A stretch of 64,000 bases of DNA, from IMG/VR virus record IMGVR_UViG_3300034072_000758, positions 248,001 through 312,000 of that record; one strand, 5' to 3'. Both the position numbers and the translations under genes were made by a program. Below are positions 7,156 to 36,202 of the stretch, piece by piece. Under the pieces are notes generated by a model. It was not told the DNA's origin. It made no database searches and saw nothing but the letters and a program-made list of their open reading frames with translations. Position 1 is the stretch's first letter. Every line of letters starts with the position of its first letter.

Positions 7156-7539
7156 ATGAGCAACTGGTATAGAAATTTGATCAACCTTCTCGAAGGCGCG
7201 GAACCATTGGTGCTTTATCACGGGACACACGCCAAGTTTGATGGTGTTCCGACCATTCCAGAAAGCGGTGCTGGTCTATATGGGCGCGGGGTTTATTTCT
7301 CGACCGATAAACGTGTTGCGCAAGGCCACGGTCCCACCATTGTCACTTGTACAGTGTCAGGAAAACTCGCCACCAATGCTCAATTGGATGCGGCTAGAGA
7401 ACAAGCATCAGAAGAAGGCTTTGTTAGATCGGAGAAGATGCATCGTGCCAGAGACATCCTTATCGATGCCGGGTATGTGGGTGTTCAGGATAAAGACCTT
7501 GTGGTGGTCTATGTTCAGGATGCTATGACGAGAGTTTAA
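7156..7539 (+). CDS. Leader-bearing ADP-ribosyltransferase-like protein
   Basis: MSNWYRNLINLLE leader; LYHGT...YGRGVYFSTD. Confidence 0.65.
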   Translation: MSNWYRNLINLLEGAEPLVLYHGTHAKFDGVPTIPESGAGLYGRGVYFSTDKRVAQGHGPTIVTCTVSGKLATNAQLDAAREQASEEGFVRSEKMHRARDILIDAGYVGVQDKDLVVVYVQDAMTRV

Positions 7540-7819
7540 GCGCATCTATCTTCGTTTGAAGCGTGGCAATCTCGTTTAGATCAATATCCACCGCTTCGAC
7601 CGAATAATACTGTTTCGATTGTTGAAATTTCGAAGCGAGGTCCAATGCTTCTCCTGCTACCAGTATAGCATCAGCTACCAAAGCGTCTGCTGCGTTTTGG
7701 ACGAAGTATTTGGATAGGATATGCGTAGTCGCATCAACCTCAGCCAGCCGGGTCGTATGATACGCCGTTAGGACTTGCTCTACGAGCTTGCGTAAATTGA
7801 GATTATTTTGATATGACAT
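7523..7819 (-). CDS. Hypothetical late protein
   Basis: TTTAAATA and AAGGA RBS upstream; N-terminus ...LRKLVE. Confidence 0.55.
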   Translation of the reverse strand: MSYQNNLNLRKLVEQVLTAYHTTRLAEVDATTHILSKYFVQNAADALVADAILVAGEALDLASKFQQSKQYYSVEAVDIDLNEIATLQTKIDALKLSS

Positions 7820-7839
7820 ACTATCCTTATATCGCATAT

Positions 7840-8331
7840 TTAAAATGTGTCAAGCCAATAGGGGGCGCGACGATTTTTCCAAAAATGAATGTGTGCTTTT
7901 TCATGTCGATAGAAAAAACGATAGCTATCAACGAAATTATCACCTCTATATTTTTCAGGCATACAAAGCGTTACAGACGTAAATGGAATGTCCGGTAAGC
8001 TATCTATCCATAAAGGGTTTTGTTCTGAGAACTGATGCCATTTTAAGAATGATTTATGAAATTTTGTTTCTGGGTGATTATAGCGGTAGCGCCATTCGTG
8101 GTGTAACGCATGAAGTAAATCTTGTAACCAAAGAGCATTGTAGCGAGATTGTCCTACCCATAACCGCGAAGGGTGGTTCCAGTGTGTTGGCTTCATAGGC
8201 GTCTCATACCCAAGAACATTTGCTGTTGTACACAAAAGTTGCGCATACTCGGAAATCATTTTTACCACATGCTTATCGACATGGTATTCTGCGCAAATTA
8301 CGGGATCGAGGTCTAAGGCAAATATATTCAT
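7840..8331 (-). CDS. Pyrimidine-dimer DNA glycosylase (DenV-like) family protein
   Basis: MNIFALD.DP..CAEYHVDKHVVKMISEYAQLL...THWNHP. Confidence 0.75.
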   Translation of the reverse strand: MNIFALDLDPVICAEYHVDKHVVKMISEYAQLLCTTANVLGYETPMKPTHWNHPSRLWVGQSRYNALWLQDLLHALHHEWRYRYNHPETKFHKSFLKWHQFSEQNPLWIDSLPDIPFTSVTLCMPEKYRGDNFVDSYRFFYRHEKAHIHFWKNRRAPYWLDTF

Positions 8332-8498
8332 AAAAAAACATTTAGCCATAGTGTTGGTTTAGTTCAATTTAAAACCGGATTGACCCATCGATGTTTTTCC
8401 ATATATTTTTTTAGCATTAAAAAAGACGCTGCCTACCATTTACTACTTTGTTCAATATGTTTCAAACCGCCGATGGGCTACGCCTAAGTAAAAAATAC

Positions 8499-8963
8499 TT
8501 AGTCGGGGCGAAAAACTTTCTCTCCCCAATATTTCTTAGCAGCTTCACAGTATGCGGCATAGGCTTGTTCGGGAGTGTCAAAGTCACCAAGATGTCTATG
8601 CCGATCCCTGTAGAACAATCTAGCTTGATATTTACCGCGACGTTTGGTTACGCCTTTATATCCAGTAGATGAATTTTTTTGAAGGCCGCGTTTTGCTCGA
8701 CTTTCTTCATCCGTTAGCGGTTGAAGATTATCGTGGCGATCATCACCTTTTACGTTGTTTATGTGATCAATATTGGGCCGATCATCTGGGATAGCGCCAT
8801 ATACGAGCACGTACATGAGTCTATGCCGCATATATGGTTCACCATCGACCGTAACGCGATAATATCCTTCTCCTTTACCTTTTTCGCACCCGGCGTTTAA
8901 AAGGGTTTCTGGGGTGAAAATTTCTCGAAGACGTTCTTGTGTGGGTAACGGTTTTCTATACAT
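8499..8963 (-). mobile_element. Free-standing HNH-AP2 homing endonuclease
   Basis: HRLMY...IDHINNVKGDDRHDNL (HNH) plus NSSTGYKGV...YQARL...HLGDFDTPEQAYAAY (AP2). Confidence 0.85.
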
Positions 8964-9007
8964 ACCGCTATGGTATCGTAACCTCACAAGTATAGTCAAA
9001 ATAAATT

Positions 9008-9259
9008 TTAATCGTTGACCACACCCGTCCAGACGACCTTGCTAGGTGTCGTTTGAATTTTCAGCCACCTCAGCGCTTCGTGTTCAGTATCGAACATGGC
9101 TGTCCCTTTGATCGGCAAGATGTAATACTTCCAGCATTTGTAGCGATTGATGAACCCTTTGAAAGGGTTGATAGAAAATTCACAATGTTCTGCTTCCCAC
9201 TGAGGGAAATAGTACATCGTGCCATTGCGCGGTTCACGAACGATGCGAACGTTGGTCAT
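9008..9259 (-). CDS. Hypothetical protein
   Basis: Coupled to upstream ORF. Confidence 0.6.
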   Translation of the reverse strand: MTNVRIVREPRNGTMYYFPQWEAEHCEFSINPFKGFINRYKCWKYYILPIKGTAMFDTEHEALRWLKIQTTPSKVVWTGVVND

Positions 9260-9900
9260 TAGCGTTTATCCATTATAAGCTTAGACACGAGAAGAGAAAA
9301 CTCGACAGTGAAGCAATTGTCACGGATTTGATTGTCCGTGTCAACACAAGCATAGCTGATCGGCCCACGAAACTTGTTCAGTGCCTCCACACTATCAAGA
9401 CTTTCGGCGTAGGTAGAGATCGTCGCCCAGAGTTCATCCCGACGATGATAGACCGCTTGCTGCGCATCAGCGAAGGCAACCAGATCGGCCATCATTTTCT
9501 TTGTCAACTTGAGTGGCGTTGTTTCGGGAGTATGTGTGGTGTAGTTATACGGCGTATTGGACTCCGGGTCTTTGTAGAAGTCGCAGAGAACCGTAGCCCA
9601 TTCAACGCCGAAGCATCGGCGATACTTGATGTCGGCTTGGGTGATCATGTGGACCTGATGCATGGCATCCCGGCCCTTACGCAACGTGAGGTCCATAGCG
9701 TAGACCTTCTTACCGATCCGATTCCAGAGCTTTACCTGAATATCATAAACACGATCCAATTCATCGGCCAGATCAGTACACTGGTTGAGAAATGCTTCGG
9801 TAAGGATATGAGCATGTTCAGTCGGAACATACGCCATATAGCGCGAGAGATTTTGGGCGCGCTTTGTTTTCTTCTTGCTCGTGGTAGGATCAGCGCTCAT
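9259..9900 (-). CDS. Hypothetical protein
   Basis: GGAG RBS before MSADP. Confidence 0.65.
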   Translation of the reverse strand: MSADPTTSKKKTKRAQNLSRYMAYVPTEHAHILTEAFLNQCTDLADELDRVYDIQVKLWNRIGKKVYAMDLTLRKGRDAMHQVHMITQADIKYRRCFGVEWATVLCDFYKDPESNTPYNYTTHTPETTPLKLTKKMMADLVAFADAQQAVYHRRDELWATISTYAESLDSVEALNKFRGPISYACVDTDNQIRDNCFTVEFSLLVSKLIMDKR

Positions 9901-10031
9901 GATATTTTGTCTCCACAATATGATATACTTTCACCTATAGCATATATCGACAGCAAGTCAACATATAAACAATAATTGACCCACTTCACCGAACGATGAT
10001 ATACATATTTACCAAATAAAAGGACTACTCA

Positions 10032-10586
10032 ATGGACGATTACGCCAAAGAAGCTCAAGAAAAAAGCGTATTCAAGTTATATCAACCCGTTCGTGTAAGA
10101 CGATCTGGTGGATTGTCGCTCGTTAATGGAATGCACGAGATACCGCGTCCCGAAGATGATCCCAATTTGTATTTCGATTCCAGAGTTGTTGGGTGGGACA
10201 TGTTCGGGCGGATCGAAGTCGCCACGATTATCACAGATAACGTCCACTGTACTGAATGGTGTTGGTCCGAAGATAAGCTTCAAGCCCAACCAGCCGGTAA
10301 ATGGGACTGGTATCAGGATCGTATGGCCGGTCTGGCGGCTGGCAAAGATGGATATTGGGATAAAAATCGTTTCTGGCAGGAAGTGGGTTCCGAAATCTAC
10401 TTTATGTGGGAACTCACCACTAAATTTTGCGGGGATGATAATTATACTCTTGGCGAAACGGTCAAAGCGGTCTTAGTCGGCCCGCATATCAATCATGGTG
10501 ACTGGATAGTTTCTTATGAAAAGAAACCCAAGGACATGTGGATTACACGAGTTCTGAATGAACGGCAGATGTGGCCGCGCGAATAG
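10032..10586 (+). CDS. Hypothetical protein
   Basis: AAGGA RBS, TTGACC promoter-like element. Confidence 0.65.
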   Translation: MDDYAKEAQEKSVFKLYQPVRVRRSGGLSLVNGMHEIPRPEDDPNLYFDSRVVGWDMFGRIEVATIITDNVHCTEWCWSEDKLQAQPAGKWDWYQDRMAGLAAGKDGYWDKNRFWQEVGSEIYFMWELTTKFCGDDNYTLGETVKAVLVGPHINHGDWIVSYEKKPKDMWITRVLNERQMWPRE

Positions 10587-10660
10587 CTTATATTTCAGAA
10601 GCAACTTTCCGAGACGATGCCCTCATCAGGGCCACTGTTTAACAGAATAGAAGTCGGTGA

Positions 10661-10924
10661 TCATCGGTCGATGGTGATTACAGCGGGAATGATTTCGAAA
10701 TATTCTTTGTATTGTTCGTCCGTGAAATTACCAGCGGATACATCGGCTGATTTTTTCAAGAACGCACTCGCCTTCCCAATTGTCGGGAAAAGCTTTGATT
10801 TTTCTAATTCTTTTTGGAATCCTTTGTTGGCCAGATAATCTCCTGCGTCCCAACACCCATAATAGAAATATTCACTTGGGTGGTTTTTGATCGCCCGAAC
10901 GATATATTGCGTAAATGTCAGCAC
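10661..10924 (-). CDS. Hypothetical protein
   Basis: GAGG RBS, GTG start. Confidence 0.55.
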   Translation of the reverse strand: MLTFTQYIVRAIKNHPSEYFYYGCWDAGDYLANKGFQKELEKSKLFPTIGKASAFLKKSADVSAGNFTDEQYKEYFEIIPAVITIDR

Positions 10925-10979
10925 AGGAACCTCACTAAGGATAGCTATCCTAAAACATATGGGAGGATCGTTGTCAATC

Positions 10980-10987
10980 TATAAATA
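10980..10987 (+). promoter_or_regulatory. T4-like late promoter, 5 nt before ATG
   Basis: TATAAATA-TACGT-ATG. Confidence 0.8.
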
Positions 10988-10992
10988 TACGT

Positions 10993-11802
10993 ATGAGCAA
11001 TTGGTATCGAAATCTTGTAAATCTGATAGAAAGCGCTATAGACGAAGATGTATCTGACGGTTATTACCCGGCAACCGAACGTAACATAAAGCTTGCTAAA
11101 GCCTTTGTATTCGACAAATGGAAAGAGCGAGCCTATGAGCGCATGGGTGGTTTGGATAGCTATTCTCCGCCTACTGATTTAAGCAATTCCTGTAAATTCA
11201 CATCACAGTTTGTCAAGAATATTTTTGGCGGAACCATACAGGGAAACTTCGATCACCAGTATGTCGTCAAGGATGGTGCTATCATCGATTTGAATATCGA
11301 TGCTAAGGATGTCAAGACATTGGGCGATAAAGCTCATGTCCATGATCCTAAGTTCTTTGGAAAGCGTGACCACAAAGCTTCCATGAAAAGCTGCGAACCA
11401 AGAGTAGCCGCATGGACCCAAGAGTTTCTGTCCAAGTACGGTTCGAAGCTCGATAAAAAGCCTATTTACGAACAAGTTATAGAGCCTATTACGGTCTATC
11501 ATGTTACGCCAAAACGTAATTTGAAATCGATCAAATCCAACGGCTTAACTCCACAAATCGGAGATAATAGCACCCGTCTTGGAGAGACCGAAGAAGCCAT
11601 TCATGTATTTTATAATTTGGACGATCTTGAGGATGCGCTTTCGAATTGGGATTTGTTTGACGAAGATGAAGAACTTGTTTGCTTGAAGATAACAGTACCA
11701 AAAAACGAAGTAAAAGACGATCCGGCGTATCCTAATTCTGTAGGATTGATAAAAACGGTTGTTCCGCCACAGAATATAAAGAAGATGAATATAGAGCTAT
11801 GA
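10993..11802 (+). CDS. Leader-bearing protein: papain/transglutaminase-like domain plus ART-like domain
   Basis: MSNWYRNLVNLIE; NSCKF...DHQYV...IIDL; VYHVTPKRNLKSIKSNGLTP. Confidence 0.6.
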   Translation: MSNWYRNLVNLIESAIDEDVSDGYYPATERNIKLAKAFVFDKWKERAYERMGGLDSYSPPTDLSNSCKFTSQFVKNIFGGTIQGNFDHQYVVKDGAIIDLNIDAKDVKTLGDKAHVHDPKFFGKRDHKASMKSCEPRVAAWTQEFLSKYGSKLDKKPIYEQVIEPITVYHVTPKRNLKSIKSNGLTPQIGDNSTRLGETEEAIHVFYNLDDLEDALSNWDLFDEDEELVCLKITVPKNEVKDDPAYPNSVGLIKTVVPPQNIKKMNIEL

Positions 11803-12914
11803 GTAATTGGTACAGAGAAATTGTAAATCTACTGGAAGGTATCGGAGATATTCGACCGCACATTGAAACGATTGAGAAACAATATGGGGTATCCATAAAA
11901 TACACTATAGACAACAACGTATTTCGTTTAGAAAACATAGATCGAACAACTGGCACCAAAGGCAATGGAAGTCTCGCTTTATCCAAGTTGATCGAACTTA
12001 CTAATGAATATGGATTTAATATTACGCTAACGGTGGATAAAGGTCATCCAAATCTTGTCAAATTTTATCTGGATCATGGGTTTGTCCCTGCCGATCATCC
12101 AACCGACATAAAAGCGTGGTTCAATAAACATCAAAGAGACTGGTATTATGCTGACGAATATGAGCCAGAAGATGAAGATGATGAGCGACCAGAATTACCT
12201 TGGGTGAATATGATACATTACGCCGGTCAAGGAATAAGGTCTCCAAACACCATAATATCAGAAGATTTTAACATAGATGACTATACGTCTCTTGGGTTGG
12301 ATGCGACCAAAGCCGAACCATTCATGAAGGCCGGGTTTTCTCCCAAGGCCGCTAGAATGTATCTTGAAGTCAATGCTACGGTTGATGACGCGATGAGAGA
12401 TCGAGAGTTCGGCGAAAGACGTAGAGCCAAAGAAGAAGCCGAACAAAAAATGCTCGCCAACATCGAAAAAGTTGCGAAGAAGAATACGCCTATCACTTAT
12501 AACGAGGCTTGTGCGATCATCGCAGCCGATGATGATTTGTTCGATTTGGTACGCGGTTGGACTTGGAATGCTGACTATGCTGAGTACGACCAACCGGAAG
12601 ACGCTGCCCGCTTTCTTGCGGTGTTGAAGCGTATGAAGCCGGTTAAGAAGCATCTGTTTCGTGGCCAGATGCCATTTGGTGACCATGATAGCCATACGCG
12701 CGGCTTTCACTCATGGTCGGCCAATCGTCAGACTGCTGAAATTTTCGCCGAACGTAATGGTGTAGTTCTGGAAATTAATCGTCCGATCCAAGGAGTCGCA
12801 TTGAGCGATGTCCTTGATCTGCGCATGAAGCTCAGACCGGGTGAAAGCCATTATGGCGGACCACAAGCTGAATGGTTTGTTGTGGACCAGCCTGAGCAAT
12901 TTAAAAAATATTGA
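11799..12914 (+). CDS. Leader-bearing protein: GNAT-like domain plus R-S-E type ART-like domain
   Basis: MSNWYREIVNLLE; KGNGSLAL...LVKFYLDHGF; LFRG...HSWS...QAEWFV. Confidence 0.6.
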   Translation: MSNWYREIVNLLEGIGDIRPHIETIEKQYGVSIKYTIDNNVFRLENIDRTTGTKGNGSLALSKLIELTNEYGFNITLTVDKGHPNLVKFYLDHGFVPADHPTDIKAWFNKHQRDWYYADEYEPEDEDDERPELPWVNMIHYAGQGIRSPNTIISEDFNIDDYTSLGLDATKAEPFMKAGFSPKAARMYLEVNATVDDAMRDREFGERRRAKEEAEQKMLANIEKVAKKNTPITYNEACAIIAADDDLFDLVRGWTWNADYAEYDQPEDAARFLAVLKRMKPVKKHLFRGQMPFGDHDSHTRGFHSWSANRQTAEIFAERNGVVLEINRPIQGVALSDVLDLRMKLRPGESHYGGPQAEWFVVDQPEQFKKY

Positions 12915-13058
12915 CAGGCTTCAACATGATTTGTCTCCATCGCGGCCTTATGCCATAATGGCATCTTTGAAGAAATTGAAAACCTTTTTGGCTTTGTTTT
13001 TATCGGGTGACCAGCACGTTAGCAACCTCACGTAGCCCAAACGGACTGGATAAAAAAA

Positions 13059-13847
13059 TTACCAATCACCCTCATATGAAGGGTCGATGTAAAGCGGATC
13101 GATCATCACAATCTGTCCATTAGAACGCATCATTAGGTTATGTGGGGTAACATCTGCGTGTGGCTCCCAATTCGAAATGAATTTGGAGAGCTTGGCCAAA
13201 TCAGGATCACCGGCAATCGCGTCCTTATCCCTCCACGGTGCCGAATCAATCTGTTCCATCTTCTCACAAAATTCAACAGCCTTGTCAGTAGGGCAAGGAA
13301 CTAAGGTCTCAAGCCTAACCGCTTTAAAGATGCTATTAATTCGCAATGGGTTCCCTTTTATCTTCGGGACATACTTGTTACCCTTGTTGGATAACATGAA
13401 ATGAACAAACTCATCGTAACCCTGATCGTTGCGATACACTTTCAGAACATATGAATATGCCGGATGACTGAACACCGCTCCGTTGATACCCGATCCAATA
13501 AGGTCGAAGCCATAGTTCTTCATTGTCTTAACGAGGCTACGTTTCCATGCCGGGTTTTTTCTAGCCGCTTGTTGATGCACGTTTTTATCAATTTTAGGGT
13601 CATTAAACGATGATTTGAAATTTCGGTAATCATCGAGCGGACCTTCTTCAAGTTTAGAAATGCGTGGCTTGAAAAGCTTCTGGTCACCCTTATTGGTCTT
13701 CAATACTGGCTGGTTGTGTTCATCCTTATCGAACCCTTTGACAACAGCCTTGCGGTTCTTGAATTTACCCACGAGAACTTCATCGCCGACTTCGATGTCT
13801 GGTAATTCAAGTGTCTCTTTACTTTCAAGGATTTCACGATAGCGCAT
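13059..13847 (-). CDS. Leader-bearing protein kinase-like protein
   Basis: MRYREILE; IGSGINGAVF...VLKVY...ADVTPHNLMM...MIDP. Confidence 0.7.
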   Translation of the reverse strand: MRYREILESKETLELPDIEVGDEVLVGKFKNRKAVVKGFDKDEHNQPVLKTNKGDQKLFKPRISKLEEGPLDDYRNFKSSFNDPKIDKNVHQQAARKNPAWKRSLVKTMKNYGFDLIGSGINGAVFSHPAYSYVLKVYRNDQGYDEFVHFMLSNKGNKYVPKIKGNPLRINSIFKAVRLETLVPCPTDKAVEFCEKMEQIDSAPWRDKDAIAGDPDLAKLSKFISNWEPHADVTPHNLMMRSNGQIVMIDPLYIDPSYEGDW

Positions 13848-13856
13848 GTGTATATT

Positions 13857-14234
13857 TTACCAGTTCTTACAGGACCAGTAATTAGCCTTCCACTTTGGGC
13901 CGGGATCGGTATCGCAATGATGTCTTGCTCTATATGATTTTCTGTGTTCGGGATAACGCTTCTTGATCGTCATATCGGGGTCACCGAAATTGACTTTTAC
14001 AACATTATCCTTGTCGTTCTTCACATAGACAGAAAACTTCTTAGGGCCATCTGGGGTTCTGAATGGTTTGTTCAGTGTAACTTCGCGCCCTTGGTATTCA
14101 GCTTCGGTCAGAGTTTCAGACATTTCTACCCAGCCGTATTTTTCAAAGAAATCGTCACCGTGAAGGGTTTCTTCGCAATTTTCACGGTCGTGAGACTCGA
14201 TAAGATTGATTATATTTCGATACCAGTGTGTCAT
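13857..14234 (-). CDS. Leader-bearing phage protein of unknown function
   Basis: GTTAAATA-TAATC-ATG; MTHWYRNIINLIE; KVNFGDP...YRARHHCD...YWSCKNW. Confidence 0.7.
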   Translation of the reverse strand: MTHWYRNIINLIESHDRENCEETLHGDDFFEKYGWVEMSETLTEAEYQGREVTLNKPFRTPDGPKKFSVYVKNDKDNVVKVNFGDPDMTIKKRYPEHRKSYRARHHCDTDPGPKWKANYWSCKNW

Positions 14235-14251
14235 GATTATATTTAACAACT

Positions 14252-14878
14252 TTAATAAGCTTCATCTTTGAATGTGTAATCAAGAAGATTTATATGAGCA
14301 TTTGGTTTCAGACGAACTTCTTGTTCTTCTTCGTATGCCGGATCAGCGTTCATACCCAATGTGGCGACCCAATCGACTTCGTTTTCATCAACCTCGCCTT
14401 TCAGAACTACAATAACCGGATCAGAGATATGCTCGCGGCCCTGCCAGTAAGCTTCTGCCGAATGTTCTTCCCATGTCCAATATATACCTAAGTGACGAGA
14501 GTTCGGCTTCCACCCGCGAGGGACGGCCATCGCGCGATAGAGAATAATCTTGCCATTTTTTATACGCGAGGCGAGTTCATATTCAACCTCCGCATATCGT
14601 CCACGAACGTATTCAGAAAACCAGTTTTTAAATTCCTCAGTGGTATGGTCTACTTCACTACCATTATTTTTTGTAAAGTCCTTGAAAAAATCATCTTCTA
14701 TATCTTCCGAATCGTCTTCGATACCCATGTCTTCGCGGTATTCATCTTCGACCCGTTCACCCGTACCACTACTCCAATCAATATGATCGTAAGTAAATTC
14801 TACGACAGCATCATGAATATCAGTTGGAATCGAAGCACGTTCCATAAGATTAACAAGATTTCTATACCAGTGTGTCAT
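14252..14878 (-). CDS. Leader-bearing ART-like protein
   Basis: MTHWYRNLVNLME; LYRAM...GIYWT...EEEQEVRL. Confidence 0.6.
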   Translation of the reverse strand: MTHWYRNLVNLMERASIPTDIHDAVVEFTYDHIDWSSGTGERVEDEYREDMGIEDDSEDIEDDFFKDFTKNNGSEVDHTTEEFKNWFSEYVRGRYAEVEYELASRIKNGKIILYRAMAVPRGWKPNSRHLGIYWTWEEHSAEAYWQGREHISDPVIVVLKGEVDENEVDWVATLGMNADPAYEEEQEVRLKPNAHINLLDYTFKDEAY

Positions 14879-14883
14879 GAGTA

Positions 14884-14895
14884 TATTTATAAATA
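14884..14895. promoter_or_regulatory. Bidirectional overlapping late promoters
   Basis: Palindrome TATTTATAAATA gives TATAAATA on both strands, each 5 nt from an ATG (14878 minus, 14901 plus). Confidence 0.8.
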
Positions 14896-14900
14896 TTCAC

Positions 14901-15272
14901 ATGCGCGAATACATGACTATCCTAAACGAAATCTACCAAGAGCCGAAAGACTCTTCGTTCACACATGAGGGGGCGCAATATGATCTGAATGCCATCCTCA
15001 AAGCAACGAAGGATAATGAGACCGTTGATGTTGAGATCGCCGATTTGATCTGGGTATTCAAGTACGATCCGATGACCGAGGAAGATGCCGACCGAATATT
15101 CGGTTCCGACTTGGAAGCACCAATCCTGATCACCGTCGAAACCGAGGATGACCAAGAAAAAGTTGTTGTCTTGGATGGAGAGCACCGCCTAGCAAAAGCT
15201 GTGCTCTCAGGTCGAGCCACGTTACCAGCCGTCAAAGTTGATAGAGAATTTCTTTCGAAATTCAAAATTTAA
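14901..15272 (+). CDS. Leader-bearing ParB/Srx-like protein
   Basis: MREYMTILNE; PILI...VLDGEHRLAKA. Confidence 0.7.
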   Translation: MREYMTILNEIYQEPKDSSFTHEGAQYDLNAILKATKDNETVDVEIADLIWVFKYDPMTEEDADRIFGSDLEAPILITVETEDDQEKVVVLDGEHRLAKAVLSGRATLPAVKVDREFLSKFKI

Positions 15273-15275
15273 AAG

Positions 15276-15560
15276 TTATACGCGCTTGTGATTACGTTTA
15301 TCGACTGTGATAAACAAGTACCAAGTTTCGCCATTATCACCCTCGAACACTTTACATGTTTCCAGTTGATAATTTCCTACTTTGCTCTCGCTACCAGTCT
15401 GAATGAAATACTTGTTCCGGCGTGACTTATGAAGCTTGCGCGCATGGTTGCCAGCTTTCAACCGAACAAAGATACGACCATTCTCGGAGAATACCTTGTC
15501 CAGATATTCTTTAACCAGTGGGTGATCTGTCGGGTAATCGCCATATGCTATATCGACCAA
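15276..15560 (-). CDS. Hypothetical protein
   Basis: AGGAGG RBS, TTG start. Confidence 0.6.
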   Translation of the reverse strand: MVDIAYGDYPTDHPLVKEYLDKVFSENGRIFVRLKAGNHARKLHKSRRNKYFIQTGSESKVGNYQLETCKVFEGDNGETWYLFITVDKRNHKRV

Positions 15561-15664
15561 TGCTGCCTCCTAAGTTAACTCGAACGGGTTACCGTAAGTG
15601 TTAGGGTAATATTTTCAAACAGTATCAGGTGCTCGTGTTTTGTCAATGTAATAATAAATATCAT

Positions 15665-16573
15665 ATGCGTTTATATGAAATAATGGCAAATTGGCAAATA
15701 GAAGAACAATACGCTTATGGTGATTGTGATATACTTGCTATAGGTTTACATATAAAATTGAAGTTACCACTCAGAGCCGTGGTCGATGGTGACAAGTATT
15801 CGCATGTTTGGGTATCCCCATCACCCAATACCGCACTTGATATATGGGGAGAGCGCCCAGAAAAAGAAATATATCAAGCTTGGATCGCAGAAGATGATCA
15901 AGGTGGCGAAATTAAAACCGTCTCCCTCGAATGGCTGATGGCACATTTACCAGCCAAACAAAAAGAAAATCTAAATCAGCGAGTGAAAAAATCGTTAGAA
16001 GATTTTAAAATAGTTCACCCGAACAGTAGGTTGATTGAATCTTTCGGAAAAGTATTTAACTTTGATCCACAATTAGGCGACAAAACCCTGTTCGATCTGG
16101 ATGTTAAGGCTCGAAATGGCAGCTTAACACAAGACGACTTGAAATCTTTCAGAGCATTATTGAACCGCGATAAAAACGCATTTGTTCGTATGTATCATGG
16201 CACATCAAGCTCACATGACGTTCTGGGAAAAGGATTACTACCAACCTCACCAAATCGCTCTAAAAGCCTCCAAAGTGCCGCAGGATATGTTTATGTAGCA
16301 TATGATCCGAGGATGGCGTTAGCGTTCGCACGACACGCTTACCCATCTGATAATGAATTTACCGTTTATGCCGTGGATGTGACGATAGCTCGTTTATTAC
16401 CAGACCACGATCAATTACGAAACAAACGACATTTCGCCGGTATAGAAGTGGGAGACAGTCTTGTCGATTCATTAATCTTTGGTGGTGGAGCAAGAGTTAA
16501 GGGAAAGATCAGTCCGATGCAAATTCATATCTACGGTAAATTTGATAAGAGCGGTAAAGAGATTGATTTTTGA
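15665..16573 (+). CDS. Leader-bearing protein: papain-like domain plus ART-like domain
   Basis: AATAAATA-TCAT-ATG; MRLYE; YGDCDILAIGL...HVWV...ALDIWG; RLIE linker; MYHGT...GLLP...YVYVA. Confidence 0.6.
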   Translation: MRLYEIMANWQIEEQYAYGDCDILAIGLHIKLKLPLRAVVDGDKYSHVWVSPSPNTALDIWGERPEKEIYQAWIAEDDQGGEIKTVSLEWLMAHLPAKQKENLNQRVKKSLEDFKIVHPNSRLIESFGKVFNFDPQLGDKTLFDLDVKARNGSLTQDDLKSFRALLNRDKNAFVRMYHGTSSSHDVLGKGLLPTSPNRSKSLQSAAGYVYVAYDPRMALAFARHAYPSDNEFTVYAVDVTIARLLPDHDQLRNKRHFAGIEVGDSLVDSLIFGGGARVKGKISPMQIHIYGKFDKSGKEIDF

Positions 16574-27120: not shown

Positions 27121-27123
27121 TAT

Positions 27124-29441: not shown

Positions 29442-29625
29442 GAGTCAATACTCCACATCAAATTATATATGCCTGAACATTAGAAAGATTTATTTTGATA
29501 GTCAATAAAAAAATGAATTAAGACAAATACATATAATCTAATTATAACAAAATCGCATATTCTGGTTTCAAGAAGAATCAATAAGAGACAGCGTTTTTTG
29601 AAGAATAATATGCTAAAATGGAATA

Positions 29626-29808
29626 TTACTTTTTCTTACTAAACAATCCAGCGATCCCGCCAATCAACCCAACCACGGCCAGAACGATCAGTGTAGCAAG
29701 TCCGAGGAAGCCAACGACCACCAACCCAATCGAGAAAATGATCATGTTCTCGATACGGTAGCCGTCGAAGTTGTTCTCAGCCTTGTCCAAAAAATAATCA
29801 ACCAGCAT
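29626..29808 (-). CDS. Small membrane protein
   Basis: Hydrophobic C-terminal half, KKK end. Confidence 0.45.
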   Translation of the reverse strand: MLVDYFLDKAENNFDGYRIENMIIFSIGLVVVGFLGLATLIVLAVVGLIGGIAGLFSKKK

Positions 29809-29809
29809 C

Positions 29810-30352
29810 CTATGTCCTCACCTTTAAAGGTATGTATCTAGCTTCTTCGTTGGTTAGGCCGAAATAATACTTCAACAACGACTGTATTGCCGACTTTTCT
29901 TTAGAGCCAACCACGTAGAAAATATGGAAAAGAGATCGCAAAATTACAACATATACACTTTCTCCACTTTGAGGAAGGCGCGGATCACTTAGTACCTTAT
30001 TATAAAGCTTGTGTAACGAAGTTGCTTGAAGCAAAACCGTTGTGAATTGATTATCATCCGGCATGCATTTTTGTCTGAATAAAAGTACCTTACCAAGATG
30101 TATCATGAGTTCATCTGCGGTTATGTTCTCAAAATCCATGACAGTCAGGTTGTTAAACTGGATACTATCTTCCAGATTCACAATGGAATATGTTCCGATC
30201 AGATTTAGTAATACCCATGCCAGCTTAATCAAAGACTCTGGATCGGTCGTCATTTGATGATTGGGATCGAAGTACCCATAAACTATGGACTGATAGATGA
30301 CCAACCCATCATTGGTATCGAACGTTATGTTACTATGTGGTGACATGGACAC
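29810..30352 (-). CDS. Hypothetical protein
   Basis: Operonic ORF. Confidence 0.55.
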   Translation of the reverse strand: MSMSPHSNITFDTNDGLVIYQSIVYGYFDPNHQMTTDPESLIKLAWVLLNLIGTYSIVNLEDSIQFNNLTVMDFENITADELMIHLGKVLLFRQKCMPDDNQFTTVLLQATSLHKLYNKVLSDPRLPQSGESVYVVILRSLFHIFYVVGSKEKSAIQSLLKYYFGLTNEEARYIPLKVRT

Positions 30353-30567
30353 TTCGAGTTATAGCAAACATAACCCATCGGGACGGTCCAGTCGAGATTA
30401 CAGACCGGGCAGTTGGAAGGAGGTGGAATATACGGGTCACCCGTAGTCCGATGCGGTAACGGGGTGGGAGGATTACCCGTGGGTTCCTCATATTCCTGTG
30501 ATAGAAGCTCGTCTAATTTCTTCTGGTTCATGGAAAGATGATACATTAACCATGAAGCAAAAAGCAA
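30325..30567 (-). CDS. Small Cys-rich protein (start likely MNQKK)
   Basis: CPVC...GYVC...CPC. Confidence 0.55.
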   Translation of the reverse strand: MLFASWLMYHLSMNQKKLDELLSQEYEEPTGNPPTPLPHRTTGDPYIPPPSNCPVCNLDWTVPMGYVCYNSKCPCHHIVT

Positions 30568-30578
30568 TAAATAAATTC

Positions 30579-31724
30579 ATGCGTTTACTTGAGTTAAAAC
30601 ATTCCGAACAAACTGTTGTACTGTATAGAGGCGACAATAAGCGTATCGATGTGTTTGATATTGAACAAACCGATATTAAGGCTCTGTTCGGAAAAGGTAT
30701 CTATTTGACTGATAGCAAAGTAGTCGCAAAGGATTACGCAAAGAAAGGCATTAATGTATTCTTCGAGGGTGATTACCCTTCTAAGAGTAAGAAAAGTCTA
30801 CTTAACAAATACTTGTTCAAAGTCATGATGGAAGAACTTAACCTTAAAGAAAAGGTCTACATGGCGACAAACAAAAAATATGAGCCGGAATTTCCGCGAT
30901 CTGGTCCTGAGCGGGTTCAAGCCATTGCTATGCTTAAGCTGGCAGTGAAGCACGTTGTTGCCGAGACGTTAGCTAAGGCCGTCACACTTTGGAATCAGCG
31001 TCGAAAGAATGTCAAGTTCCACACTGATACAACCGGGGCAGTCGTCATGATCGACAAGTCTGTTAAGGGGAGCGTATCTGAGTTCCACATTCCGACCGAT
31101 TATATGGCGCGTGTATTGGATGGCGAAGCACCCCTCCCAGACAAAGCTTTGAAGGTCGTTCGAGACACATTCGATGCCTTCCGTAGAAGCAAAGGTGGAT
31201 CAATCGAAGATGCTTTAGATTTTAGAAGTGTTGCGCACAAAGATAGCTTGGTCACTAAACATCTGAACTTCGATCAGTTCATAAAATACTATAAATCGCA
31301 TGGTTCCGAATATGCTTGGAGTGATGATGATGTGCGTGGTGGTGATAATCAGAACCCATCATTTGACTTCATCTTCAATGGTCAACACGCCGGGGAAATT
31401 TTAAAGATCAAAGAATTTCAGGATCATTTGATCGCGGGTCTCATGACTATTGGATATGTCGGTTTCAAATATGATGGTGGTATCCGCGCTGGGGGTGCTC
31501 TGGCTCGTGGCGGTGGTGGTTTGCGTCACACAGCGTATTCATTCTGGAACGCAGAATATATCAACGCACATCGCGTCAATGATGAAGAACCAGAAGACGC
31601 AAGAAACTATAATCCAAAGGTTACCGTTGACGATTATGAATTTGCGATTAACAGTGCTGTGGGCGAATCTGTCGAGATCGCCGAGACGTTCGATACGTCG
31701 CTTGATGTAAAATACAGAGGGTAA
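30579..31724 (+). CDS. Leader-bearing ART-like (polyvalent-protein type) protein
   Basis: AATAAATA-AATTC-ATG; MRLLE; LYRG...F...LFGKGIYLTDS..VA..YA; GYVGFKY. Confidence 0.65.
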   Translation: MRLLELKHSEQTVVLYRGDNKRIDVFDIEQTDIKALFGKGIYLTDSKVVAKDYAKKGINVFFEGDYPSKSKKSLLNKYLFKVMMEELNLKEKVYMATNKKYEPEFPRSGPERVQAIAMLKLAVKHVVAETLAKAVTLWNQRRKNVKFHTDTTGAVVMIDKSVKGSVSEFHIPTDYMARVLDGEAPLPDKALKVVRDTFDAFRRSKGGSIEDALDFRSVAHKDSLVTKHLNFDQFIKYYKSHGSEYAWSDDDVRGGDNQNPSFDFIFNGQHAGEILKIKEFQDHLIAGLMTIGYVGFKYDGGIRAGGALARGGGGLRHTAYSFWNAEYINAHRVNDEEPEDARNYNPKVTVDDYEFAINSAVGESVEIAETFDTSLDVKYRG

Positions 31725-32061
31725 GAATGGTGGATATGTTACCAAGATCGACATTGAGGGTCATCCATTTTTTGTCACGTTCTCTCCAAATGATAGCAAC
31801 GAATACCACGTCAGCTTTTATGATAAGAACTTCAACTTAGGAACAACCAATTCTGGCGAAGTTTCGGCCATGAAAGTTTTGAGTTCTATCGTAGATGTAA
31901 CCAAAAAGTTCGTGGATACTTATTCGCCCAACGCCTTGATCTTCGGCACGAGCGATGTAAAGAAGAACGCTTTATATGGCAAGATCGCTAAAAAGATTGG
32001 GGTACAATTACAAGCTCAATCCGGCCCTCACGGCGATTATTATAAGATTGAGCTTAACTGA
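31711..32061 (+). pseudogene. Frameshifted C-terminal domain of the 30579 gene (open +1 frame)
   Basis: The +1 frame is open from 31711 to 32061 and reads as a continuation of the domain starting at IAETFD. Confidence 0.5.
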
Positions 32062-32072
32062 CCAGCGCGCAA

Positions 32073-32477
32073 CTAACAATATTCGGGGCGCTCTGGCTGA
32101 ACTCCAAAGCAAACCATGAGACAGAGATCGTCTTGGAATTTTTCAACGTCCCCAGAGAAATACCAGCGAGCGCCGCCACCATGAATGATATTCCCGGTTT
32201 GCCAGTCGCGGTTCGAGATCGCTTCGTAGAACATCCCCGCACCTTGGGTCTCGATCCGCCATTCTTCGCAGAACATTGCGGATAAGCTGTCGCCGAAATA
32301 CAGGACGGTGAATGGCTTGCCTATAAATTCGATCACACACTCGCGGTAATTTTTCGCACAAATGATCAGGTTGCGCGGTTGAGGGATAATCTTTTCGGAC
32401 AACTTCTCACCGGTCTCCACAACATAGATAGCGTCAAGATCGATGTTGACAGGCTTATTTTTTTCAAACTTTAACAT
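32073..32477 (-). CDS. Hypothetical protein, C-terminal tail family
   Basis: FQDDLCLMVCFG near the C-terminus. Confidence 0.55.
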   Translation of the reverse strand: MLKFEKNKPVNIDLDAIYVVETGEKLSEKIIPQPRNLIICAKNYRECVIEFIGKPFTVLYFGDSLSAMFCEEWRIETQGAGMFYEAISNRDWQTGNIIHGGGARWYFSGDVEKFQDDLCLMVCFGVQPERPEYC

Positions 32478-33108
32478 GGTCTATCAACTCGTCACAGGCT
32501 TTGTTCAAGACCTCTTCGCGGGTGCCAGCGAAGGTATTCTCATGGCTCATTGGAGCATAGTAATCTCTGACCAGAATATTTTGTCTGGTCCCTATATCAT
32601 TGGCGACAACTATATCGGCCCCGGACTCACTGATTTGGCGGCGAGCCTTGGCTATTTGTGTGGTAGCGTCGTCATTGGAGGTCGTCTTGAAGCCGATCAC
32701 AAAGATGTCGGGCCGACGAAGCTTGATGTTGCTGATGATCTTCTTCGATGGTGTCAGGACCATAGTGTGTGGACCATCGCGGGATTGTAGGCGGGGCGCG
32801 GTCTTCCCGCTGGGGACTTCATCGATCTCGCCCGTAAAGTCACAGAGAGCCACGTTGAAAATCAGGGCCGATACGCCGGGATCGGTCAGGAGAGTGTTGA
32901 CGTAGATTTCCACATCCAGATTAGTGATCAATCCTGAATGATGATCCGCCATCTTGGTGAGAACCAGTTCCGGGTTACAGTGTTCCCGAAAATAGCTCAT
33001 GTAGTCGTACATATAGCGCGCTGTTCCACCGAACGCGCGTGTACACAAAGAAAGGTGGGCGCGAACGTCATTGAACGTTCCGCCACCCATGATTACGACT
33101 TTACTCAC
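32464..33108 (-). CDS. CoaB-like (DFP C-terminal, phosphopantothenate-cysteine ligase) protein
   Basis: VVIMGGGT...NVALCDF...VIGFK...DIVVAND; GTG start at 33108. Confidence 0.7.
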   Translation of the reverse strand: MSKVVIMGGGTFNDVRAHLSLCTRAFGGTARYMYDYMSYFREHCNPELVLTKMADHHSGLITNLDVEIYVNTLLTDPGVSALIFNVALCDFTGEIDEVPSGKTAPRLQSRDGPHTMVLTPSKKIISNIKLRRPDIFVIGFKTTSNDDATTQIAKARRQISESGADIVVANDIGTRQNILVRDYYAPMSHENTFAGTREEVLNKACDELIDHVKV

Positions 33109-33706
33109 CGATGATCCTTTGGAAAACTTCGTAGAGTTCTTCGGGCAGGGAGGTCCGGCGAGCGAAGAACGTTTTATTGAGCATGTAGCTACAACGCTTC
33201 GGATGATAGCGAGGTGTAGCCACCTTCGTTTCACCATGTCTGTTGACATAGGTTTCGATTTCGAGAAGTGAATTGTTCGTGATCAGGTCTTCAACGTCGA
33301 TCAGGTCTTGGTGTGTATCAAGGCGCAAAGGGGCGCTATACTTTTCAGTCTTGAAGATTTCACAAGCGGTCTTGATCGTCTCACCAAAGACAATATCCGT
33401 ATCGAGGATGCGAACGTTTGAGCCACGATAATTGATGTTGCCACACTTATGGCGTCGGCTTACCGAACCATCAGAGCGGAACACCCGCGATAGTTGGAAG
33501 TAAGGGATTTGGAGCTTGCTCGCTATGTGGCGGTCAATAGAGATCAATACTTCACCAAGTTGAACATCAAAGTCCTTGAGACTGATGTTGGTGTGATCGA
33601 TCAGGACCACGTTCATATTCGTGTGTTGCTCAATAGCTTGCTTGAGCTTTTCTTGGAGAGCAACACCTTCTGCGGTGAAAGCCCTCAAGAGGATTTCGGT
33701 TTTCAT
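33101..33706 (-). CDS. Hypothetical protein
   Basis: GGAGG RBS. Confidence 0.65.
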   Translation of the reverse strand: MKTEILLRAFTAEGVALQEKLKQAIEQHTNMNVVLIDHTNISLKDFDVQLGEVLISIDRHIASKLQIPYFQLSRVFRSDGSVSRRHKCGNINYRGSNVRILDTDIVFGETIKTACEIFKTEKYSAPLRLDTHQDLIDVEDLITNNSLLEIETYVNRHGETKVATPRYHPKRCSYMLNKTFFARRTSLPEELYEVFQRIIGE

Positions 33707-33769
33707 GCGTCATGACCTCCATGCGCTATATATCAGATATTTATAACACCGGTTGATCAATTTGGCAAG

Positions 33770-34207
33770 TTATTTTAATAACAAAGCCGTCATCAAAATA
33801 TCTCCGATACGTTTCTCGGAAATGAACCGATTATCTTCTGGCCATCTACGATCATAATCCCAGCGGTCAAAGAGATAAGCATGTGAATCTACAGCCTTCG
33901 TAGTATCGAATACATAATTTGCCACGTTGTCATATCGCGGAAGGCCATCATACAGATGAATTTCCTTTTGTTGTTCTGGGGTAATCGTACCCTCGAACAT
34001 GTATTCAACTTGAAAGTGTGGCCAAACGTTAAACTTGATCGTCAGATATACTTTGCCTTTGGGACCGAAACCCAAGTGCTCACGCTTGATGTCAATCCCG
34101 TAGGAACCACCTTCAAAATCAAATTTGATTCGTCTTGCCCCACTACCTAAAAAGATAGGTTCGGCCAGCGTGGCGAACGGTGCGACGTTATCAAATATTT
34201 TGTACAT
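33770..34207 (-). CDS. Hypothetical protein, C-terminal tail family
   Basis: Ends IGDILMTALLLK. Confidence 0.6.
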   Translation of the reverse strand: MYKIFDNVAPFATLAEPIFLGSGARRIKFDFEGGSYGIDIKREHLGFGPKGKVYLTIKFNVWPHFQVEYMFEGTITPEQQKEIHLYDGLPRYDNVANYVFDTTKAVDSHAYLFDRWDYDRRWPEDNRFISEKRIGDILMTALLLK

Positions 34208-34968
34208 TAGACCTTCAAATTCCTCGCGGCTTTTTCTTTCAGCATTTCCGCAATGAGCTTGGACATGTTGTCGTGCTCCGCAAGAAACCCTTCGACCATA
34301 TCGAAGAGGCGCTGGCCGCGTTCGCCATATGCCGACTTGTACTGATACAGATGCGAGCGCAACACCCGCATAAACTCTACTGTTCCATCCATGAAGTCGG
34401 GGTGAACGTTAGACGGCATCTTGAACAGCGTCCAGTTCTCGAATGTTTGCCAGATGCGGCTCAACAGTGCGGACGCGAGTTCCTTGGTGCTACCGTTATA
34501 GGTGGCGCGGTCAGTATAAAGATCAATGTTGTCGTAACGCAGCGCAAATTCCAGCGCTTCACGTTGGTCGAACGCCTTCTCGATAAACTCTTCGCGTGTC
34601 AGGGGCTTGTACGGGTCTTCGCGGACCATCACGCCGTTTGCGTCATAACCCCAAGTGTCCATAAACATGCCGATCATGGCAGACAGACGATTCGGATACA
34701 GTGTCGGATACGCCAGCAGCATATCCTTGATGTGATTCTCGAACAGATTACCGGGAAGAGGTTCTTGTTCCGGCATTGTGTCGGTTTCTTTAAGCGTGAA
34801 CGCCGAAATATAGAAGTCGCGGATCGCGCCTTCGTCATCGGTGATACGGACGGTTTCGCGGTCGAGCTTATTGCCGAACATGTCCTCGAAACCACGGCTA
34901 TGGACTTCATACGCACGACCGTGAGTCATAGCTCCCATTGTGCTACCGGTATATGTGGCAATAAGCAT
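34207..34968 (-). CDS. Hypothetical protein
   Basis: AGGAG RBS, TTGACA promoter. Confidence 0.7.
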   Translation of the reverse strand: MLIATYTGSTMGAMTHGRAYEVHSRGFEDMFGNKLDRETVRITDDEGAIRDFYISAFTLKETDTMPEQEPLPGNLFENHIKDMLLAYPTLYPNRLSAMIGMFMDTWGYDANGVMVREDPYKPLTREEFIEKAFDQREALEFALRYDNIDLYTDRATYNGSTKELASALLSRIWQTFENWTLFKMPSNVHPDFMDGTVEFMRVLRSHLYQYKSAYGERGQRLFDMVEGFLAEHDNMSKLIAEMLKEKAARNLKV

Positions 34969-35019
34969 GTGGTGGTCTCCTATATTGTATATCTCACAAT
35001 ATCACAGAAGACTAGATTG

Positions 35020-35283
35020 TCAAGTCTTCGGCTTCTTCTTATTTTTCTTATAGTCTTTGAAGAATTTGTCTATAGCTGGTTTGTGTTTGGTTTCGTGTAG
35101 ATAACCGTAACCACCGCGCCCACTATATCCACCCGTTCCCCTGATCGGGAAAACTTGGTTAGTAAGCGTCCAATCCAAAAAGGCGACGACCAAATCATGA
35201 TCGTCTTTTATACGGACATATACGGCATCGATTATTTTTACAGACATAATCCTATTATTAGGATTACGCCTCTTCGATGTCAA
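35020..35283 (-). CDS. Hypothetical protein (start likely MSVKI)
   Basis: Operonic ORF. Confidence 0.5.
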   Translation of the reverse strand: MTSKRRNPNNRIMSVKIIDAVYVRIKDDHDLVVAFLDWTLTNQVFPIRGTGGYSGRGGYGYLHETKHKPAIDKFFKDYKKNKKKPKT

Positions 35284-35482
35284 TATTTACTTTGACGACC
35301 GACTGACCATGATCGATTTCGTTGAAGATACCGTCGATTTCGGCATCCGTTTCCTTGGACAGATTTTGGGCGGTCAGACGAGAGAAGTTTTCGATAAAAC
35401 GAATCTTGGCGACACGCGCAGAGCCAGCCACGGTGTAGAGAAAGATACCGCCCGACTTCTTTTTGATAGCATATGCTTTCAT
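35264..35482 (-). CDS. Hypothetical protein
   Basis: GGGAG RBS. Confidence 0.55.
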   Translation of the reverse strand: MKAYAIKKKSGGIFLYTVAGSARVAKIRFIENFSRLTAQNLSKETDAEIDGIFNEIDHGQSVVKVNIDIEEA

Positions 35483-35554
35483 ATTTTATACTCCCGATAT
35501 AAATGATATAGTTTCACCTTACCACATGTTTTCTGGTTGTCAATAAATACACCT

Positions 35555-36202
35555 ATGCGTTATCACGAAATACTTAGAGAAAGCCGAGAAGCATCTTTGT
35601 ATCATGGCTATAAGAAGCCGGAACATGCTCGCATGGCTCTTGAGGCTAACGAAATGTTGGGGACAACTACTCAGCGCTGGTGGCCTAACGGGGTTGAACT
35701 CGTCCCCGAAGATGACCCTAAGTACCGCGAATCATACTGGATGAAGGGTATCTCGTTGACCCGCGATCTTAGCTACGCAGCGCATTGGGGAGACATTATT
35801 TTTGAACTCGATCAGCGCGCATTGTCTTACAATTATAAGATCATACCATTCAACTGGATGCGAGGTCGAGCACAGAAATATTCAGTCAATGATACGCAAA
35901 GCGACGTAGCTCACTTTAGAAAGGGTGAGCGCGAAGAGTTTCTGATCCTTGAAAAGGGACCAAATAATTACATGTTTCCGAAAGACCCTGAGTTCGATGA
36001 TTACCCGGAGTATGAACCGCGTTTAGACCTCAAGGCTTTTAAGACCCCAGCTAACAAAAAGCTGGCTCCATTGTCTCGCTACTTAAAAGCAATTTATGTC
36101 GAGCCGTATTTCATGAACAAATATCCCGAAACATATGACTATCAGTATTTTATTGATCATCCTAAATTCGGTGGATTTAAGTCTTTCCCGCGCAGAAAAT
36201 AA
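35555..36202 (+). CDS. Leader-bearing ART-like protein
   Basis: AATAAATA-CACCT-ATG; MRYHEILRE; LYHG...GISLTRD...EREE. Confidence 0.6.
   Translation: MRYHEILRESREASLYHGYKKPEHARMALEANEMLGTTTQRWWPNGVELVPEDDPKYRESYWMKGISLTRDLSYAAHWGDIIFELDQRALSYNYKIIPFNWMRGRAQKYSVNDTQSDVAHFRKGEREEFLILEKGPNNYMFPKDPEFDDYPEYEPRLDLKAFKTPANKKLAPLSRYLKAIYVEPYFMNKYPETYDYQYFIDHPKFGGFKSFPRRK

Follow-up and report, generated by a model that had tools for sequence, protein, structure and literature searches.

Why should a single phage carry a series of small, unlike proteins that open with the same kind of short leader and hold the motifs of ADP-ribosyltransferases (ARTs)? The question is raised by a 64,000-nucleotide stretch of phage DNA (here the window), bases 248001-312000 of the 516,805-bp IMG/VR record IMGVR_UViG_3300034072_000758, in which seven such proteins, here called A to G, lie between positions 7156 and 36202; coordinates are those of the window unless they are given as genome positions. 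The seven open reading frames (ORFs) and the ART motif set quoted for each in the original prediction were all located in the sequence as described, and both types of first motif residue occur, as had been stated, with His in A, B, E and G and Arg in C, D and F. We consider it probable, at roughly 0.6, that this 516.8-kb phage with a T4-type head encodes leader-tagged small effectors, seven of them with ART-fold domains of at least four lineages, which would be packaged in the head and injected in the manner of T4 Alt. The lineages are diverged ART-PolyVal (A and F), a His-type family resembling TreX and the Tpt1/KptA NAD lobe (E and probably B), a C3/iota-type R-S-E domain joined to a GNAT (C) and two families without annotation, R-[S/T]-ExE (D) and H-SxT-ExE (G). 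The ART fold of B, D and G, the catalytic activity, packaging, leader cleavage, injection and targets, with the wide target range suggested in the original prediction, are the parts of this reading that we infer. The core of the original prediction, divergent ART-like domains on leader-bearing proteins, was upheld, and four of the seven proteins have independent homology or structure support.

Protein E (302 aa, 15665-16573, plus strand) consists of the leader MRLYEIM, an uncharacterised N-terminal domain and a C-terminal ART domain. Its frame is open from 15629 to 16573 and its actual start is the ATG at 15665; the starts of E, F and G at 15665, 30579 and 35555 were set from the leader, the N-termini of orthologues and an ATAAATA box. 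The ART domain (about 16121-16537) holds MYHGT, with the invariant His encoded at 16196-16198, the GYVY strand (YVYV) and PDxDQL. A full HMMER scan of 1.84 billion representatives returned 246 homologues of the domain (residues about 165-303), many of them within polyvalent proteins of 1-4 kaa (thousand amino acids) and next to ART-PolyVal, and in an alignment of 60 sequences H31 and D100 never vary and the GYVY strand hardly does. No Pfam model covers the domain, its homologues giving weak Arr-ms matches only, and the family profile found nothing meaningful among PDB sequences. A viral-contig scan for relatives of E found none, and the related 415-kb phage G001 has no E homologue. The AlphaFold model, built from that alignment, has a predicted local distance difference test score (pLDDT) of 95.6, and Foldseek returned 15 PDB matches at E <= 1e-3, each of which is an ART (TreX/TreTu, cholera, LT, pertussis and Tpt1/KptA). 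The structure search proposed with the original prediction recovered the ART fold for both E and C, and superposition on solved ARTs displayed the split beta-sheet core of the fold in both predicted models; on this basis, we firmly assign E to the ART fold. A stand-alone protein of 121 aa (P0015) is homologous to the N-terminal domain of E (about 120 aa, 15665-16060) at 57% identity; the domain matches no known family.

Protein C (371 aa, 11799-12914, plus strand) opens with a 13-residue leader ending in L-L-E; a GNAT-like domain makes up its N-terminal part, joined by a helical linker to a C3/iota-type R-S-E ART domain at residues 233-371 (12495-12911). The motifs LFRG, SWS and QAE hold R288, S305-W-S307 and Q356-x-E358, which are invariant in its family. 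The C-terminal 220 residues have homologues at 41-65% identity, and the homologues elsewhere are mostly stand-alone megaphage proteins that open with an MRYxEI leader. In the predicted model the C-terminal half lies mostly at pLDDT 70-92, and Foldseek ranked R-S-E toxins at the top and gave GNATs for the N-terminus. In an independent scan of 48,161 chains all matches over residues 232-371 were ARTs, except the VIP2-like domain of anthrax lethal factor, and Swiss-Prot models concur, with arginine-specific protein ARTs among the matches. Matches of C to PCNA stem from the acidic linker and were dismissed. The likeness to Alt/VIP2 is at the level of the fold only (Atlas feature score 0.75), and neither C nor D gave anything at E <= 1 against Pfam, including PF03496 ADPrib_exo_Tox (T4 Alt/VIP2). 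The predicted structure thus makes C a well-supported case of a GNAT fused to an R-S-E ART.

Proteins A and F are tied to the ART-PolyVal family. A (127 aa, 7156-7539, plus strand) has a leader of residues 1-13 with an L-L-E end, followed by a diverged ART-PolyVal domain with LYHGT (His22 in YHGT) and then the GVYFS strand. F (381 aa, 30579-31724, plus strand) has the leader MRLLELKHSE and an ART-PolyVal-type domain with LYRG and IYLT, in which Arg17 stands where the family has His. Against Pfam, A reached E 2.5e-5 with PF18760 (25.5 / 24.1 bits, gathering cut-off 31.2), and F reached E 5.7e-5 with ART-PolyVal (24.4 / 25.7 bits) and 5.5e-5 with DUF3990, both under the cut-off. With a reference profile of five cut-off-passing ART-PolyVal proteins of the genome and polyvalent-protein domains, hhalign gave a probability of 96.3% for A (E 1.5e-9, 92 columns) and 92.6% for F (E 4.5e-7, 83 columns). 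Iterated jackhmmer searches recruit ART-PolyVal repeats of polyvalent proteins from A and link F with the in-genome ART-PolyVal paralogues. On profile-profile comparison, the placement of A and F as divergent members of the ART-PolyVal group is firm. The first two ART motifs are clear in both, and no third residue was identified in either. F has orthologues in G001 and L009/L010 at 34-35% identity with the leader MREFINLLE; by eye, an insert of about 230 aa seems to separate the two halves of its domain, GIYLT forming a strand close to the N-terminus and GYVG...AYSFW another around residues 300-340. PADLOC gave weak candidate-defence models only for F.

Protein D (208 aa) lies on the minus strand at 14252-14878 and hence starts at 14878, which corrects the original prediction. 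Its leader, residues 1-13, ends in L-M-E and is followed by an acidic/helical N-terminal part; the C-terminal domain (14255-14593, about 113 aa) holds the motifs LYRA, IYWT and EQE (R115, GIYW-T135 and E185-x-E187). The domain was found in 33 IMG/VR loci, mostly of 200-600-kb phages, either in small leader-bearing proteins or as a module in multidomain proteins of 350-1100 aa; R, GIYW, T and ExE are invariant in the alignment of 24 sequences, and S or T always follows GIYW. The ESM Atlas model of D (predicted template-modelling score 0.77) aligns exactly over residues 94/105-208 with DUF3990 clusters, and also resembles a DarT/PARP cluster (TM 0.45) and, by features, DRAT (0.91). Protein G (215 aa, 35555-36202, plus strand) carries the leader MRYHEILRE and a domain with His17, G65-I-S67-L-T69-R70 and E125-R-E127-E128, corresponding to the motifs LYHG, ISLT and EREE. 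Thirteen of its 15 homologues start with M-R, most as MR[YWF]xEI, and across the 16 aligned sequences G65, S67, R70, I96, P98, E127 and E128 are invariant, T69 and E125 nearly so, and His17 is mostly kept (R once, L once). Its Atlas neighbours are DUF2971 (TM 0.53), DUF3626 (0.52), AbiGi (0.49) and Lart1 (0.41), and by features a DarT/PARP cluster and Arr-ms (0.91); of these, AbiGi and Lart1 belong to the known ARTs, and DUF2971 has been predicted to be one (PMC12522546). G has paralogues in the genome, and another copy is found within a 1026-aa polyvalent protein. The models suggest that D is probably an R-S-E ART of a new, unannotated family and G probably an ART-type member of a distinct unannotated phage family.

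Sequence searches with D and G leave room for a different view, namely that the ART fold is confined to A, C, E and F, and that B, D and G are unrelated domains with coincidental H/R...S/T...E motifs, which would leave four or five ARTs. D found no match in Pfam, NCBIfam or PDB sequences and G none in Pfam or PDB sequences; Pfam searches over all members of both families gave noise, and their profiles found nothing meaningful among PDB sequences. The matches of B lie at E 1e-3 to 0.07, and hhalign between families (B-E, C-D, D-E, D-G, E-G) gave low probabilities, mostly below 10%, so that the seven proteins are not joined as one family by these sequence tools. We nevertheless regard this view as unlikely, since in D (24 sequences) and G (16) the columns that never vary are those of the motif, in the order and spacing of ARTs, an agreement of motif and invariant residues that extends to the families of C and E. 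Furthermore, the Atlas models of D and G neighbour ART-clan families, with DUF3990 spanning exactly the D domain, B matches Tpt1 in three independent libraries at the same motif, and D-like and G-like domains occur in polyvalent-type proteins together with E-like and, once, ART-PolyVal-like domains. A strict two-motif pattern is met by 3 ORFs of the genome against 0.005 expected from shuffled ORFs, the pattern being post hoc and devised after the data had been seen.

The weakest of the seven is B (269 aa, 10993-11802, plus strand), a possible ART by one weak Tpt1-like sequence match. It comprises a leader of residues 1-13 ending in L-I-E, an uncharacterised N-terminal domain and, C-terminally, some 120 aa (11443-11799; His170, His204) that resemble the nicotinamide adenine dinucleotide (NAD) lobe of Tpt1/KptA. 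The part that matches Tpt1 is solely the motif VYHVT followed by SIKSNGL (VYHVT...SIKSNGLTPQ); the second His lies in IHVF, as in the H-H-h clade. A phmmer search of PDB gave Tpt1 6e3a at E 1.1e-3 over residues 131-205, Pfam gave PTS_2-RNA at E 0.074 (13.5 bits, PF01885 cut-off 26) and NCBIfam gave RNA 2'-phosphotransferase at E 0.035 (14 bits, cut-off 239). Aligned with the E family, B matches in register at an hhalign probability of just 8.7%. The single relative found for it is a 131-aa ORF of the megaphage G001, the conservation of H170 and H204 thus resting on two sequences; a word-indexed protein search returned only B itself, and a viral-contig scan for relatives of the domain found none. 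B and E should not be filed as Tpt1, because the NAD lobe alone is matched and the PF01885 family cut-offs are missed.

The Tpt1 likeness of B bears on what the domains might act on. Several of them could modify nucleic acids or small molecules, by ADP-ribosylation of RNA or DNA ends or 2'-phosphate removal (E, B), DarT-like DNA modification (G) or NAD hydrolysis. Besides the match of B, G neighbours AbiGi and DUF2971, which are linked to DarT-like DNA-acting ARTs (PMC12522546), and TreX-family toxins are reported to strike translation components, RNA among them. The N-terminal RNA lobe of Tpt1 was not found in E or B, however, where the Pfam and NCBIfam matches span the NAD-lobe motif only and the VIA alignment is limited to chain residues of about 85-183, and C matches arginine-specific protein ARTs. 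We therefore hold such activities to be possible, if rather doubtful, for these domains.

The claim of at least seven ARTs is secure for the genome as a whole, where nine cases are solid, and not yet secure for the 30-kb stretch, where only A, C, E and F are firm. Beyond the window, five more ORFs score above the Pfam ART-PolyVal cut-off (39-72 bits) and at least four are further candidates, namely two G-like paralogues, one weak E-like ORF and one PV-like ORF, which brings the ART-like proteins of the genome to about 16. Because these additional ORFs lie outside the window, seven is an undercount for the genome, and the genome-wide paralogues mean that ART-like domains are not limited to 7156-36202. 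The weak E-like ORF (genome 246714-247421, minus strand) lies about 580 bp before the window start, matches the E-family profile at E 0.021, and has the leader MRYEELLEAA and the motifs YYHGT, GRVYLA and PDEDS. The PV-like protein of 312 aa may hold two ART domains. Among the proteins at genome 223536-225596 (minus), 106280-107629 (plus) and 149146-150084 (minus) are some in which an ART-like domain is accompanied by an HExxH metallopeptidase-like motif, in one of the two G-like paralogues and in an ART-PolyVal combination; these larger proteins resemble mini polyvalent proteins.

The leader spans 9-13 residues, takes two forms (M-[S/T]-[N/H]-W-Y-R-N-h-h-N-L-h-E and M-R-[Y/W/L]-x-E-[I/L]-h-x-E; class 1 is found on 7 ORFs) and opens about 25 ORFs of the genome, that is, A to G and about 18 more. 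Every leader ends in [L/I]-x-E, nearly all of the roughly 16 ART-like proteins bear one, and orthologues in other megaphages retain a leader of the same style with diverged mature parts. Two regex matches that fell in-frame inside the arginyl-tRNA synthetase and a phosphoesterase ORF were discarded as chance. In T4, a 10-residue N-terminal capsid-targeting sequence (CTS) docks internal proteins on the core, residues 4 and 7 being needed for targeting and residues 8 and 10 for processing; the protease gp21 removes it, and Alt sheds an N-terminal propeptide (PMC9026906). Proteases of the T4 and phiKZ types all cleave after Glu (PMC9026906; PMC5694885). In all seven proteins the short leader offers a targeting position that is aromatic or hydrophobic as well as an [L/I]-x-E site, and the same genome encodes a gp21-type protease and a gp23-type capsid protein. 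These are a Peptidase_S77, T4-type prohead protease gene (genome 323908-324354, plus strand, 75 bits) and a Gp23 major capsid protein gene (genome 327390-328334, plus strand, 303.7 bits), both just beyond the window, and the phage is therefore T4-like, of megaphage size and with a T4-like head module.

Most leader genes also share an upstream element, ATAAATA, which corresponds to the T4 late-promoter core. In 39 of its 115 occurrences an ATG follows at a distance of exactly 5 nt and in another 9 at 4 nt, other spacings having 1-3 each; 46 of these lead into ORFs of 50 aa or more. At 5 nt, it precedes A, B, D, E, F and G and most other leader genes, as well as position 14901. C has no ATAAATA of its own and its start overlaps the stop of B (ATGA), and it is thus probably translated from the message of B. 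If the geometry is as in T4, the late mRNAs would be leaderless, starting at or next to the A of AUG with no Shine-Dalgarno sequence. The comparison with T4 Alt is strengthened by the gp21 and gp23 genes, the [L/I]-x-E leader ends and the late-promoter-like box. The proposed course would begin with late transcription of the leader genes from ATAAATA boxes 5 nt ahead of the ATG; the leader, like the T4 CTS, would dock its protein onto the prohead scaffolding core, and the gp21-type protease would trim it after Glu. The mature enzymes would then be ejected with the DNA and, as Alt does, would ADP-ribosylate host proteins and/or nucleic acids right at the onset of infection.

The same box can also be read differently. 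The ART folds may be right and the proteins ordinary intracellular enzymes made after infection, as ModA/ModB or AcrIF11, neither packaged nor injected, with an N-terminus that reflects leaderless mRNAs or a shared regulatory or degradation signal. ATAAATA at the fixed 5 nt also stands ahead of many genes that have no leader peptide, which points to nucleotide-level constraint on the 5' end, the ART genes are not beside the head module, and A has a weak AcrIF11-type ART match (E 0.055). Yet those many ATAAATA-N5-ATG genes equally imply that leaderless translation does not need this peptide, and the amino acids of the leader are kept in distant orthologues that use different codons, its end is always [L/I]-x-E, in the manner of T4-type protease sites, and a protease to match is encoded in the genome. 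We consider unpackaged enzymes quite unlikely for these reasons and favour head-packaged, injected effectors.

Several points weigh against head-packaged ART effectors. The phage is uncultured and known from a metagenome contig alone; compared with the T4 CTS, the leader is shorter by one residue or longer by three; constraints on leaderless-mRNA translation are another possible cause of the conserved 5' end, and about 40-70 kb separate the ART genes from the head genes. As to the fold, B, D and G have no significant ART match in Pfam, NCBIfam or PDB sequences, A and F stay under the Pfam gathering score, and F has the Arg in place of the family His. The ART-family neighbours of D and G in the Atlas are at a low TM of 0.37-0.55 (annotated families up to about 0.53), and the feature-based family call for D was flagged by the tool as possibly wrong. 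The low hhalign probabilities between families count here too. In PHROGs, six of the seven proteins have no match and F matches function-unknown entries only. Finally, the ART-PolyVal-type proteins show no evident conserved third catalytic residue, so that some of them could be NADases or binders, or lack activity.

The leader is not restricted to ARTs. It also stands on GNATs (genome 508716-509111 and 141194-141616, both plus strand, and the N-terminus of C at 11853-12233), a set made up of one stand-alone GNAT, one C-like N-terminal domain and C itself; it thus tags several kinds of modifying enzyme. Between C and D, a kinase-like protein with the leader MRYREILE (13059-13847, minus strand; phrog_15752, T7 gp0.7-type protein kinase, E 6.4e-11) is a non-ART member of the same tagged set, and adjoining D is a leader-bearing (MTHWYRNIINLIE) 125-aa protein (13857-14234, minus strand) that matches the function-unknown phrog_7595 at E 7e-14. 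GNATs and gp0.7-like kinases are enzyme types that phages deploy on host proteins (PMC7824862). A bolder form of the packaging reading, which we put forward tentatively and with the odds leaning somewhat against it, is that more than 12 ARTs (including the D, E and G types absent from Pfam), the GNATs and the kinase would all be zip-coded by a universal capsid-targeting leader, made from leaderless late mRNAs, packed into the head and delivered to the host all at once, so as to shut down transcription, translation and NAD-dependent defence at time zero.

The source record has direct terminal repeats and 45% G+C; a near-identity DNA search against GenBank phages gave no match, and the metagenome relatives of the phage measure 415-607 kb. 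The large-phage genes in the window include helicases, a full-length arginyl-tRNA synthetase (3254-5035, plus strand) and a nicotinate phosphoribosyltransferase for NAD salvage (61957-63201, minus strand; Pfam NAPRTase E 2.4e-36, NAPRTase_N E 5e-26), which is a possible source of the ART co-substrate. A 168-aa macro-domain protein (50239-50745, minus strand; PF01661, 34.9 bits, above cut-off), of a type that binds or removes ADP-ribose, is a possible eraser or reader partner of the ART set, and the genome has no ARH-type hydrolase (PF03747). The macro-domain and NAPRTase genes fit an economy of ADP-ribosylation and NAD. Elsewhere in the window, a ParB N-terminal domain and a GNAT acetyltransferase domain are joined in one 522-aa protein (47815-49383, plus strand).

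If packaged, these proteins would be the largest known pre-formed set of ADP-ribosylating effectors from one virus, and domains of polyvalent proteins would be deliverable also as many separately tagged small proteins. Three ART-type families have no Pfam model, namely E (246 representative sequences), D (33 viral contigs) and G (15 homologues), and these types may target defence systems or nucleic acids, among others. The leader, being short and conserved, is a candidate for a portable cargo-loading signal for large phage heads.

Among known systems, T4 Alt and the internal proteins IPI-III are alike in the gp23 and gp21 homologues, the short leader ending in [L/I]-x-E and the late-promoter-like TATAAATA core upstream, and the likeness to Alt extends to an ART enzyme that is presumed here to be packaged and injected. 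The leader differs from the T4 CTS in length and sequence, and T4 has one packaged ART, whereas this phage has seven to about 16 ART-fold proteins, none of which matches the Alt/VIP2 Pfam model. C shares the fold and the R...S-x-S...Q-x-E arrangement of the C3, iota/CDTa, VIP2, Certhrax and ExoS-type arginine/asparagine ARTs, but it is very compact (17-20 residues from R to S), GNAT-fused and without a sequence-level match to them. D, compared with the C3/iota-type R-S-E ARTs, has R...[S/T]...E-x-E. E resembles the Rhs/T6SS (type VI secretion system) toxins TreX and TreTu of Xenorhabdus and Salmonella at 14-16% identity, with another delivery route and no immunity gene beside it. B has in common with Tpt1/KptA RNA 2'-phosphotransferase the YH[GV]T...I..xGL motif and the second His, but the NAD lobe alone matches, the N-terminal RNA lobe being undetected and the family cut-offs unmet. 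The nearest annotated Atlas neighbours of G, with its motif order H / SxT / ExE, are AbiGi, DUF2971 and Lart1, at a TM of just 0.4-0.53 and without a sequence match.

The ART-PolyVal family (PF18760; Iyer et al. 2017, PMC5512222; PMC9503650) is the one to which A, F and the five cut-off-passing paralogues belong or which they adjoin, A and F lying below its cut-off and F having Arg for His. Domains like those of D, E and G occur elsewhere in polyvalent proteins or other large multidomain phage proteins, and the predicted role shared with the ART-PolyVal systems is early modification of the host after injection. A polyvalent protein is one giant processed polypeptide; in this phage the domains are instead spread over many small single-domain proteins that each bear a leader. 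In another giant phage, Bacillus phage G (498 kb), a BFVD search with the E model matched no fewer than eight uncharacterised proteins (Gp336, 53, 251, 532, 568, 233, 141 and 610) to the E-type ART domain, by predicted structure only; these matches suggest that ART expansions recur in the largest phages, of which they may be a general trait. Earlier publications already describe head-packaged ARTs, the occurrence of several ARTs in one jumbo phage, and ARTs as the modifying enzymes found most often in injected polyvalent proteins (PMC9503650; PMC7824862). New here are the number and diversity of ART lineages, the proposed delivery as separate leader-tagged small proteins and three families without a Pfam model. 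As the concept is established by T4 Alt, jumbo-phage ARTs and polyvalent ARTs, the advance lies in scale and organisation and not in principle.

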